The notes under the pieces were generated by a model. The model ran no database searches and was not told where the DNA came from. It saw only the letters and a program-made list of their open reading frames with translations. Positions 1,404 through 5,747 of a stretch of 5,747 bases of DNA are shown in pieces. How positions within the stretch are numbered: the stretch's first letter is position 1; each line of letters opens with the position of its first letter. Origin of the DNA: Amoeboradix gromovi X-113 (taxonomy: Eukaryota; Fungi; Sanchytriomycota); contig JADGIF010000631.1 of the NCBI GenBank assembly GCA_018985225.1, positions 1 through 5,747 of the forward strand, read 5' to 3'. Made by a program: the position numbers and the translations under genes.

Positions 1404-3867
1404 CTACTTTAACTTGTCTATCAAGTATCTTTCCATCATCGTATACGACCATGTCTCACATCTAAATTAATTTAAATTACTTTTGTTCACTTTTACTAGT
1501 ACTTGGCGGTGATTTGTCATCTACAAATGTCCATAAACATTCTTGTCTTATATAGGGATCACCAGTTTCCTTTACTAGTTTTAGTACTGGCACAATCATA
1601 AGCAGGTCTATGTAATATTCGTACAACATTCGCAAAAGTCTGTTCAATCCATTGTCCATGACACTATCTAGCTGTATCTCTCCGCTCTCTAACTCTTCAT
1701 ACGGTTTCACCATCAGCATACCATTGTAATCTCTGCTCATCCATAAGTACCACCCTAACGGTGATAAAATCAAGAACAAACCATCATGTGTCAAATATTG
1801 TGTACTGGGACCTAGACAGTACTGAAACATATCATTTATTGTTGCTATATTTATTATGTTCTCTACGTTTACTACAATAGGTCTGCACATCATTTTAACA
1901 CCTTCTAATGTCATGTAATTTAATGACTCCCTAATGGGTATAATTGCCATTTGCCTCAATATTGGTGTCTTTATAAGCCCTAATCCCAACGCCATCAGAT
2001 CTCTTGGCATATTCACTCTATTGTTTTGGCACAATTGCATGATATCACCTATTTTATTCAGTATAGCTTCTTGTGCCTCTATTCCTCGCTCTATGGCCAT
2101 TCTGCCCATCCACATTAGCAATATATTGCTATTCATATTTGTTAATGCATCTTTTATACTTGTGTTTGGGACACAGCAAGTTAAAACCCTTATCCTTCTG
2201 TCTCCTTGATCACTTGTATGCAGTAATGCACATTGGAATACTGCATTGCCTACAACAGGCTCTTCTATTGTATACTCTATCAAGTATGTATTTTGTGGAT
2301 GTATATTAGCTATGGCTAGTAAATCGCTACTCCTAGTAAAGAATTGCCCATAATACTGTACAGCTCTTAATCCATTACTAGCACGTATCCTTAGCACACT
2401 CTCTAGTCCTATTCTGTTACTCCAGTATGCTGTGTAATGCATCAGTTGACTGCTAACAGTAATCGGTTGATATTTGTAAATGTTACCACCAGTGTATTTG
2501 CTGCAGTAGTACAACTCATTATTGTCATTATGGTACGAGTCTATACCTATATGGCTCCTACTTGCCTCTAAAGCTATTTGCTTAGGGTTTTTTATTGTAG
2601 CCTTTGATTTAATGATTGCTAAGATTGTACCGCCAAGAGGTTTTAAAACACAGGACATAAATGAGAGGAGAGGTGTCAAGTTACGGATGCTAGAGCTATT
2701 TGAAGTATTCATAACACTGTTACTAGCCGCAGAAGGCATACTTTCATAGGCCTCACAGAATTCTGTTAGTAGAGCGGCCATATGATCTGTTGTTTCATCA
2801 TTGTACAGCTTCATCAGCAACTCATCGCGAGGCAAAATTAGATCGTTCTCAATGTCATTGTATATATGCAGACCATTCTCGGTGATCAAAACGATATCCT
2901 GGCATAAATAAATAAATCCCAACAAACAACGGTACTGAGAATGTGGAATTTTATTTAAAAGAGGAATCATAGCACGAATATATTGCAAGTCATCAGTAAT
3001 AACATAATAACACGTTGACATGGGAGGACGTATCATGTACTCTTGGGGAGCATAGTATTCCACGGAATTGGAAGACATAATTGGATTTAAAAGGTTAGGA
3101 TCATTAGACTCCAAATTATTAAATAGTTGACAGGTGTTACATTGCCATTTGTTAATTTTAATAGTGCAGTAGCAATTAAGGTAAGTCCTGCAGCGGCGGC
3201 AACGAATAATGGCATACGAAGAAGTAAATTGTTTATTCAAAGGTTGCACATGTAGGATTAATGGAATATCAGAAGATATACTGGATGATAGTTGGATGTC
3301 ATTGGAAACGATAGCGGGTGATGGAATAGAAGGACTGATTGGTTGGTTCAATTGCTTTAAAGGTGGATTACTAAAAGAAGGCGGAGGAGGACCAGGATTT
3401 TGAAAGTTCAACAACGGTGGTGGACGGCTGGCTTTGAAAGAAGGATTGCTATTTTGAGGTGAATCGTTTGTCCTAGCGGCATAATTGAACTGAGGAGGAG
3501 CATTAACTGGCGGCTGCTGTTCATTGAATTGCGGAGTGGCGATGTTTGATGGACTCGGCTGGTTAAATGAAGGAGGATTGACCAAACCTCTTTGTTGATT
3601 AAACGAGGGACGATTCATATTTGGAGAGAATGGTCGATTCTGATTTTGTAAATGGGGCCGCTGATTATTATTCTGCATTGGCCGATTTTGAACTGGTCTA
3701 TTAAACAAAGGACGAGAATTTTGAAATTTAGGAGGATTTTGCGGATCCTGCCTTGATTGCATATTGTTTGATTGCATATTATTTTGAAATTGGTTGTTGT
3801 TCGGATTAGGACTAGGCTGTTGGGATGGTCTATTCGGTCTTTGATTATAAATTGGTTGCGGAATCAT
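1404..3867 (-). CDS. SEC24: COPII coat subunit Sec24; join(complement(1481..3867),complement(1404..1461)), ~814 aa
   Basis: P/Q/N-rich disordered N-terminus. Zn finger IIRCRRCRTYLN...KWQCNTC. SVEYYAPQEYMIRPP. Beta-sandwich IGLESVLRIRASNGL...YGQFFTRSSDLL...FQCALLHTSDQGDRRIRVLT. Helical and gelsolin-like regions. Splicing adds CETWSYTMMERYLIDKLK*, matching the Sec24 terminal 'SY..F/Y L' helix. Confidence 0.95.
1462..1480 (-). other. 19-nt spliceosomal intron GTAATTTAAATTAATTTAG
   Basis: GTAA donor and TAG acceptor; contains the TAA that ends the ORF-track ORF. Its removal gives AA|A (Lys) and restores an 18-aa Sec24-like C-terminus ending in TAG, followed by AATAAA. Confidence 0.8.
3753..3782. 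repeat. 15-nt-period tandem duplication encoding NNMQS x2 in the Sec24 N-terminus
   Basis: TTGATTGCATATT at 3753-3765 and 3768-3780. Confidence 0.8.
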
Positions 3868-4332: not shown

Positions 4333-4779
4333 GGGACACCAAATATAATAACTAGACCAAGTCGTTTTCAAAGTAGGTGCTCCATAAGGAGGAAATGCTA
4401 TTATTAATAAGAGTCATTCTTCTTTCAAACCAATTTTCTTTCATTCATGTCATTCCTATCTTTAAAATATAACAAGATGACCCATCTCTTTCAAATATAT
4501 AAGGCCTTTGAGTGTCTAAGAAAAAGGTGCATTATCTACTACTTCACCACTATTATCTTCCATTTTCTTTTTCTTCTTACCACCTTTTGTATAACTTATT
4601 TTTTGTTTTCTCTTCTTGTTAGTCATTGTTTCCAAGATTTTGATGGATGAAAAGCTTTTTTACTAAAATAATTTACTTGAACTAATCAGATTAATTTAAT
4701 TTACTATCAGTTACACACGCTTGATATAATGATTCAAACTATTTTTGAAAGTAAGTCTAGTTTTTATATTTGGTGTCCC
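4333..4779. mobile_element. 447-bp segment bounded by 25-bp inverted repeats (MITE or DNA-transposon remnant)
   Basis: 4333-4357 GGGACACCAAATATAATAACTAGAC matches the reverse complement of 4755-4779 (GGGACACCAAATATAAAAACTAGAC) at 24/25. No clear target-site duplication. A diverged third copy lies at 4868-4892. Confidence 0.6.
4380..4626 (-). pseudogene. Broken ORF: Lys-rich NLS-like N-terminus plus GIY-YIG (T5orf172/MUG113-like) motif
   Basis: ATG at 4626 gives MTNKKRKQKISYTKGGKKKKKMEDNSGEVVDNAPFS*TLKGLIY. After a frameshift at ~4493 it reads ERDGSSCYILKIGMT*MKENWFERRMTLINNSI, fitting the 'G.IY...KIG.T....R...L' pattern. Confidence 0.45.
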
Positions 4780-4994: not shown

Positions 4995-5110
4995 TTTCTT
5001 GTTAAAACACTTAATTTTCTAAAAAGTCAAGAATTCTGCAAAGAAACAAACAATTTCGATCGATCCATTACAGTGGTACCCAAGCTTCCACTACTTGAGG
5101 CTGCATTAAA
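4995..5110 (-). ncRNA. Degraded omegaRNA scaffold of Fanzor copy A (paralog of the 5437-5590 RNA)
   Basis: Colinear with B's 3' region. Stems GTAGTGG/CCACTGT (5070-5094) and CTTGA-c-TTTT/AAAA-TTAAG (5010-5031) keep their pairing through compensatory changes. Similarity to B is lost after ~4995. Confidence 0.65.
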
Positions 5111-5428
5111 TAAGGATGCATAAAAATGTATATTCCTTGCTGCTATGTGCTCGCGATCGACTTTCTAATTACTGTTTGTGCAAGTGCATGTCTCCAAATT
5201 GGTTTTCTTTAGATTACCACATATTGCACGAGTACTTCTTGGAGTATTCATTTGCTCAGCTACTATAAGCGATTTCTACAGATTAACATGTTTTGGGTGA
5301 TTAAATTTGGAGCAATTCGCGATAACTGAAAGGAGGGAATACCGAGCTTTTGTGTCGTAAGAAAAGTCAAAAAAGGTAGCAGCTTGCGGTGGTAAAGCTT
5401 ATCTAGTCACCAAAAGTTGTATATCTTA
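5110..5428 (-). pseudogene. Decayed Fanzor copy A, C-terminal half (Fanzor2-like)
   Basis: Across frames: KIYN / LVT / QAATF..SYDT / IPSFQLSRIAPNL (from 5340) / RNRL / VAEQMNTPRSTRAICGNLKKTNLETCTCTNSN*KVDREHIAARNIHF. 5178-5229 matches B 5664-5715 at 42/52 nt, with six synonymous third-position changes in the minus frame. Two Zn Cys are lost, RuvC-III D is changed to E, there is a stop at 5165-5167, and the RuvC-II E segment is missing. Confidence 0.85.
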
Positions 5429-5746
5429 TTATAATTGAAATCCGCACTGAATCTGTAAGACAGCGATTCCATACTCCTCGTTAAAAGTCCCGATTTCCGA
5501 GAAAATCGAGAATTTCCACAGAGAAACTAGCAATGCTAGATCTCCGTTACAGTGATTGCTCACGCTTTCACTACCCTGAGGCGGGATTGAATAAGGATGC
5601 ATATACTTGATGTACATGTTACCTGCCGCCATATGGTCTCTATCTATCTTCAAATGACAATTGGTACAGGTGCAAGTTTCTAAGTTGGTTTTCTTTAGAG
5701 TACCACACCTTGTACATGTCTGACTAGTAAATGATTCAATACATTC
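5429..5746 (-). CDS. Fanzor (eukaryotic TnpB-family RNA-guided endonuclease) copy B, C-terminal part; 5'-truncated by the window edge
   Basis: Open frame from 5746: ECIESFTSQTCTRCGTLKKTNLETCTCTNCHLKIDRDHMAAGNMYIKYMHPYS...GFQL*. The Fanzor-type Glu just before the Zn ribbon (5735-5737), CxxC...CxxC and the RuvC-III Asp (5636-5638) are intact. The ORF-track 5429..5653 call is the tail of this frame. Confidence 0.88.
   Translation of the reverse strand, partial: ECIESFTSQTCTRCGTLKKTNLETCTCTNCHLKIDRDHMAAGNMYIKYMHPYSIPPQGSESVSNHCNGDLALLVSLWKFSIFSEIGTFNEEYGIAVLQIQCGFQL
5437..5590 (-). ncRNA. Candidate omegaRNA scaffold of Fanzor copy B
   Basis: Consecutive minus-strand stems: GTAGTGA..GC-GTGA-GC..TCACTGT (5549-5574, GNRA loop); ACGGAGA-t-CTAGC-att-GCTAG-tt-TCTCTGT (5518-5547); TCTCGATTTT-ctcg-GAAATCGGGA (5488-5511); ACTTTT-aacg-AGGAGT; GGAATC...GATTTC (5437-5470). 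Many G-U pairs, and covariation with copy A. Confidence 0.75.
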
Positions 5747-5747
5747 G

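Follow-up and report, generated by a model that had tools for sequence, protein, structure and literature searches.

A contig-terminal Fanzor2-like frame of Amoeboradix gromovi is very probably the right end of a short, non-autonomous IS607-Fanzor2 element

The window analysed here (5,747 nt) is an entire contig (C913) of a 10.55-Mb assembly of 1319 contigs. Its minus-strand terminal stretch very probably represents the right-hand terminus of an IS607-Fanzor2 element that is short, internally deleted and non-autonomous. Over 500 such derivatives are present in the assembly, and the preliminary description of this DNA overlooked that this is one of them. The copy is almost certainly devoid of a working nuclease, and its full length, judged from the family, was probably 450-625 nt.

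The contig-terminal fragment

A minus-strand frame is open from position 5746, at the contig end, down to a stop at 5429-5431 and encodes 105 aa carrying the E-S-F-T-S-Q-T, CxxC..CxxC and D-R-D motifs previously described. Its proposed TnpB/Fanzor identity was borne out by a Pfam profile search, in which the fragment matched PF07282 (E 3.6e-9, 37.1 bits) above the gathering cut-off of 26.3. In a phmmer alignment to PDB 9B0L, the structure of the mimiviral ApmFz2 (ISvMimi), E4 of the fragment pairs with E467, and counting along the same alignment sets D37 opposite D501. Both E467 and D501 are catalytic in ApmFz2 (PMC11832414), and E4 and D37 represent two of the three catalytic residues. A Glu immediately before the zinc ribbon had been read as the Fanzor arrangement, and the pairing of E4 agrees with that reading: the shifted Glu is a mark of Fanzor and of its ancestral TnpB group (PMC11832414, PMC10530073). 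At the canonical RuvC-II site, sister copies and relatives in the alignment display Y-L-P, with Pro at that position. Judged by its sequence, the fragment is of Fanzor2-type origin, a placement that reflects best matches and not a tree: 9B0L is the best PDB match for the fragment, as it is for the protein of a second locus of the genome, C542 (E 4.4e-16), and for the intact relative P0122 (E 3.8e-23).

The C-terminus had also been described as catalytically intact. Glu, the four zinc-ribbon cysteines and Asp are indeed in place, but the A-R-N-I motif has been mutated to A-G-N-M by changes private to this copy, R-N-I being kept in 7/7 aligned full-length relatives. The RuvC-I region would fall beyond the contig end; in the one DNA run, the Logan unitigs are interrupted within the repeat, and the contig was not extended by reads. 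The features discussed below are collected in Table 1.

Table 1. Features of the IS607-Fanzor2 copy and related sequence in the window
Feature	Positions	Strand	Basis
Right-hand part of IS607-Fanzor2 element, 274 nt, cut by contig end	5474..5747	-	91-95% identity to best 39 other copies
Rearranged RuvC-II Glu codon (= ApmFz2 E467)	5735..5737	-	phmmer to 9B0L; PMC10530073, PMC11832414
C4 zinc ribbon (C11, C14, C27, C30 of fragment)	5657..5716	-	PF07282 E 3.6e-9; alignment
RuvC-III Asp codon (= ApmFz2 D501); next motif ARNI to AGNM	5636..5638	-	alignments
Predicted omegaRNA scaffold, overlapping C-terminal coding tail	5474..5596	-	fold z -3.31; L089 layout alike
Hairpin CCC-GCCTCA-GGG; loop CCTC (5581-5578) = 5' strand of predicted pseudoknot	5574..5585	-	
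GAGG = 3' strand of predicted pseudoknot	5476..5479	-	compensatory pairs
AG, putative core dinucleotide at right end	5474..5475	-	junction counts; alike in L088, L089, L091
Flank, would be guide if RNA is made; outside element	5454..5473	-	differs among copies
Older decayed copy of same lineage (paralog A)	4998..5229	-	72% identity, stops, frameshifts

A family of internally deleted copies

The match between the window and its best 39 other copies begins at about 5474. Since copies end sharply at TTTTAACGAGGAG and are followed by unrelated flanks, 5429-5473 lie outside the element, and of the unit 5429-5747 delimited earlier only the part from 5474 onwards belongs to it. A 1-nt indel variant carries the window frame past this end; the same frame terminates inside the right end in many sister copies. 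Pattern counts gave at least 527 right ends and at least 428 left ends in the assembly and 0 in controls; at about 590 nt each, 527 copies would account for roughly 3% of the assembly.

A left end lies 451-625 nt upstream for 42 of the 56 right ends examined, the remaining 14 including contig-end, long broken and older diverged copies. All 38 complete copies examined, of 450-624 nt each, are devoid of RuvC-I: their Fanzor2 match starts no earlier than residue 436 of P0122, the intact 579-aa relative from the metagenomic locus L088/L089, in which the RuvC-I Asp is residue 357. Several deletion classes can be distinguished, with Fanzor2 sequence beginning near residue 436, 470 or 496, and a remnant of the TnpA N-terminus was detected in 7 of these 38 copies. 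The suggestion of a possibly still functional family is at odds with the missing RuvC-I Asp in 38/38. No full-length open frame of the family was found among the 38 complete and three long copies of this fragmented assembly (1319 contigs), in which a long copy could be missed.

The RuvC-I region of the family has six matching places in the assembly, three of them at 85% identity or more. Two of these three carry in-frame stops (C565, two TGA; C385, one TAG), and the third, C977, known from search rows only, is split over frames with stops. Because C565 and C385 each possess a right end already, and because the C977 match sits thousands of bases inside the contig coordinates and continues downstream, none of the three looks like a piece able to complete the window copy. 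Nor does the assembly, which contains no orphan internal piece that could complete it, support a functional copy at this locus.

These results weigh on the reading of the fragment as part of a full-length, intact and working Fanzor2 with its 5' portion located past the contig boundary. The frame does run open to that boundary, E, C4 and D are all present, and related families do possess open frames (335 aa, N-terminal, in C46; 672 aa, complete, in C542). However, the Glu-C4-Asp stretch is intact in 29/51 copies, and the open frame in the window is therefore unremarkable and to be expected; RuvC-I is found in about 3 of more than 500 copies, all broken and none a joinable orphan; this copy no longer has the conserved Arg of ARNI; and C46 is just 80% identical to the family. 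We regard an intact gene as extremely improbable. A longer but broken copy retaining RuvC-I, of the kind seen in C385, C565 and C977, is a very improbable reading as well: three such copies are known, but they represent less than 1% of right ends, and the extra internal piece expected from a further one was not found in the RuvC-I searches.

Element ends, predicted RNA and selection

Left flanks conform to W-R-C-A-G (33, 32, 36, 30 and 36 of 38 at the successive positions) and the right ends to G-A-G (47, 46 and 44 of 56). Neither TIRs nor TSD were found at the asymmetric family ends, and the flanks are unrelated apart from the AG present at most junctions. A Fanzor1, or a Fanzor2 captured between TIRs, in a TIR/TSD or Helitron carrier was considered and rejected, the ends being asymmetric and without duplication. 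By analogy with bacterial IS607 elements, such as ISXfa1 (TAM GGG, right end CGG; 10.1101/2023.08.09.552727) and CboIStron (GG core, TGGG target; 10.1101/2023.11.20.567912), we infer that the core dinucleotide is AG and the TAM CAG. The right end would then escape cutting because the full TAM is absent there, following the IS607 pattern. When flanks were joined in search of empty sites, a single rough case emerged (L072), with no clean site in this genome and no restored gene.

Three metagenome contigs, L088, L089 and L091, carry intact IS607-Fanzor2 relatives whose ends bear this signature. TnpA (PF00239) and Fanzor2 are both encoded on L089 and L091, and L088 and L089, with TnpA plus Fanzor2, have about 60% protein identity to the long pieces of the family. 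L088 and L089 start with CAG/CT (the slash marking the junction) after differing flanks and end with GAGGAG; L091 has a candidate left junction CAG/CT and ends with TAGGAG. On L090, a contig with overlapping ends that may be chimeric, a right end is joined at the TnpA position that corresponds to CAG in L089, with AG counted once. The right flank is common to L088 and L089, and their left flanks differ. Genes beside L088, L089 and L091 gave no Pfam match informative about the host (virus or cell), and a scan of viral contigs with P0006 returned no match, its word patterns being probably too specific.

The hairpins noted earlier at the 3' end of the element are supported by folding (z -3.76 over 5474-5625; z -3.31 over 5474-5596; the coding control, 5600-5747, gave -0.02), but they lie inside the frame and not after it, and the conserved scaffold spans about 112-125 nt instead of some 150 nt. 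The predicted layout comprises a small hairpin and three longer stem-loops. The equivalent region of L089 folds with z -3.40 into the same layout using differing stem sequences. In every close relative the scaffold opens with the 3-bp hairpin with a 6-nt loop at 5574-5585, which is identical in L089 within DNA that is otherwise 67% identical. The loop of this hairpin could pair with the four bases immediately ahead of the core, and the two segments covary as CCTC/GAGG (window, L089), CCTA/TAGG (L094, L095, L098) and CTTA/TAAG (C542), a comparison of five related elements made by eye, with the right ends of L094, L095, L098 and C542 set by analogy. Such compensatory changes fit the pseudoknot observed in ApmFz2 and needed by IS607 TnpB. 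A pairing of the right end with 5591-5597, given by the first minimum-free-energy model, was dropped, as only the hairpin loop stays in register in relatives. Rfam contains no family matching the scaffold, and no RNA run was found to contain this DNA. An omegaRNA-like scaffold at the right end is thus a well-supported prediction. Self-targeting, or a nested guide, was also considered and rejected: 5350-5473 is no more family-like than shuffled sequence, and the would-be guide in the flank (5454-5473) bears no resemblance to family DNA (z -0.28).

Two levels of selection can be told apart among the copies. Polymorphisms shared between copies are concentrated at third codon positions (81, 51 and 239 at positions 1, 2 and 3), and rare, private substitutions are not (1.6, 2.2 and 1.6%), suggesting that the source elements were under purifying selection for protein and the inserted copies were not. 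Between 5546 and 5626 shared third-position variation falls to 6, versus 40 and 30, revealing constraint at the RNA level on the source elements. Among 50 copies compared, mean identity is 90% and no pair exceeds 97%, so that the sample bears no trace of a recent burst.

RNA-level constraint at 5546-5626 would also suit short copies that are kept as omegaRNA donors for a Fanzor2 acting in trans, or as promoters for host genes, as would the strong fold of the window copy (z -3.3), the retention of both pseudoknot strands in 29/50 copies and the location of several right ends 1-30 nt before a host ATG. Conversely, private mutations are as frequent in the RNA region (1.9-2.6%) as elsewhere, indicating that single copies are not under selection, and C542, the one complete open Fanzor2 seen, is single-copy with a different scaffold. 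Genes adjoining right ends lie head-on and tail-on in equal numbers (12 versus 12), and promoter co-option was discarded for want of any such orientation bias. Retention for either role is very improbable in our view. Nor do we give much credence to hundreds of MITE-like copies, spread through the nucleus of a reduced fungal parasite, being still transcribed as omegaRNAs with host guides and loaded in trans by a surviving Fanzor2, a prospect that we rate as very unlikely; were it true, a trans-loading Fanzor2 (C542, C459 or an unassembled copy) would dispose of a genome-wide guide library.

The short, internally deleted element that we favour probably arose as follows. In the parent, the gene for a serine recombinase, TnpA, overlapped that of a Fanzor2, the 3' end of which would have doubled as the omegaRNA. 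By analogy with bacterial IS607, TnpA would excise the element as a circle and insert it at (W)RCAG by recombination over AG, so that the left flank reads CAG and the right end GAG. With a guide RNA that begins in the right end and continues into the flank, Fanzor2 would cut empty sites, where CAG stands beside the target, and spare filled ones, where GAG does, which would promote retention; in bacteria, TnpB cutting of empty donor sites is known to favour retention (10.1101/2023.03.14.532601; 10.1101/2023.11.20.567912). Deletions joined the TnpA N-terminal region to the C-terminal part of Fanzor2 with both ends kept. Amplification in trans would then have raised the short forms to over 500 copies, and these have since decayed neutrally.

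Relationship to other Fanzor-related sequences and known systems

The only complete Fanzor2 frame seen in the genome is that of C542 (L038:1476-3491, minus; 672 aa, open, with D-P-G, Glu and Asp). It belongs to a different family, is present as a single copy, has a predicted scaffold that is short and unlike that of the window, and overlaps a TnpA (PF00239) carrying one in-frame TAG. This Fanzor2 and a 306-aa ORF without Pfam match lie between 33-nt perfect inverted repeats (L038:92-124 and 4625-4657). At C46 (L035:3-1007, minus), a Fanzor2 N-terminal frame stays open over 335 aa until the contig ends, and the TnpA frame that it overlaps is interrupted by four stops; at both C46 and C542 the frame of the nuclease has thus outlived that of the recombinase. 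In search matches to a more distant family, C459 (G000:C459:10224-11916, plus), an open TnpA frame of 245 aa precedes a long TnpB frame that is open over 498 aa, or extends to 603 aa with a single TAA at the match.

Within the window, the fold of paralog A is lost (z 0.37), and the "IPxF" motif earlier enlisted as Fanzor evidence from this paralog falls in a decayed stretch, out of register with the L-P-S-F of the family. A decayed relic of the same IS607-Fanzor2 lineage occupies about 730-914 on the minus strand (76-80% identity over about 60 nt). Broken plus-strand frames at about 500-806, with S-N-T-C-T-S-C and C-Q-Q-C..H-R-D-I-N (PF07282 E 0.003, below cut-off), are probably a relic of a different TnpB/Fanzor type. 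The window also contains a Sec24-like gene (1477-3867, minus; one 796-aa frame, PF04810 and PF08033) with an unusual C-terminal tail, which marks the host as a eukaryote, and a 447-nt MITE at 4333-4779 from a high-copy family, with 25-nt TIRs starting GGGACACC and 4-nt target duplications in copies elsewhere (AAAT in L065, ATTT in L049). Its GGG ends and ANNT duplications are reminiscent of Sola-type elements. A pile-up of joints between the MITE and right ends was put aside with the letters between the joints unread.

The arrangement typical of IS607, a TnpA (MerR-type HTH plus resolvase) upstream of tnpB, is represented by remnants in the short copies and by L089, L091 and C542. ApmFz2 (PMC11832414, PMC10530073) resembles the C913 family in its D-P-G, shifted Glu and D-R-D triad, its IS607 TnpA partner, and the pseudoknot by which its right-end RNA engages the final bases of the scaffold. 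It differs in its TAM (GGG versus a predicted CAG with AG core), in its scaffold (247 nt versus about 125 nt lying wholly within the coding tail) and in copy number, with three copies in a virus versus more than 500 deleted forms in an apparently nuclear genome. Bacterial IS607 elements with TnpB (ISXfa1, CboIStron) share the short left-flank target motif ending in the core dinucleotide, a right end with the core and not the full TAM, the absence of TIRs and TSD, and a pseudoknot that is essential in bacteria; the C913 family is set apart by its AG rather than GG core, its eukaryotic host and the MITE-like amplification of deleted forms. The eukaryotic IS607-Fanzor2 elements described by Bao and Jurka in 2013 (ACa-1/2, CRv-1, ISvAR158_1, ISvNY2A_1; PMC3627910) likewise combine D-X(n)-[TS][TS]-X-X-C4-RD with a serine recombinase, lack TIRs and TSD, and share the HTH_OrfB_IS605 domain with full-length relatives of the family, which differs from them in its very high density of short copies.

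Our literature search found no paper linking Fanzor to sanchytrids, and published eukaryotic IS607 elements have been described as sporadic (10.1101/2023.08.09.552727). The locus studied here is a dead repeat, a known kind of element at unusual density. The family as a whole shows that, in a eukaryote with a compact genome, an IS607 serine-recombinase element can reach a density of about one copy per 20 kb. The many insertions reveal target preference (CAG) and the RNA scaffold at no cost, and thereby make the intact metagenomic relatives P0122 and P0002 ready candidates for Fanzor2 nucleases with a scaffold of ~125 nt and a TAM unlike that of ApmFz2.
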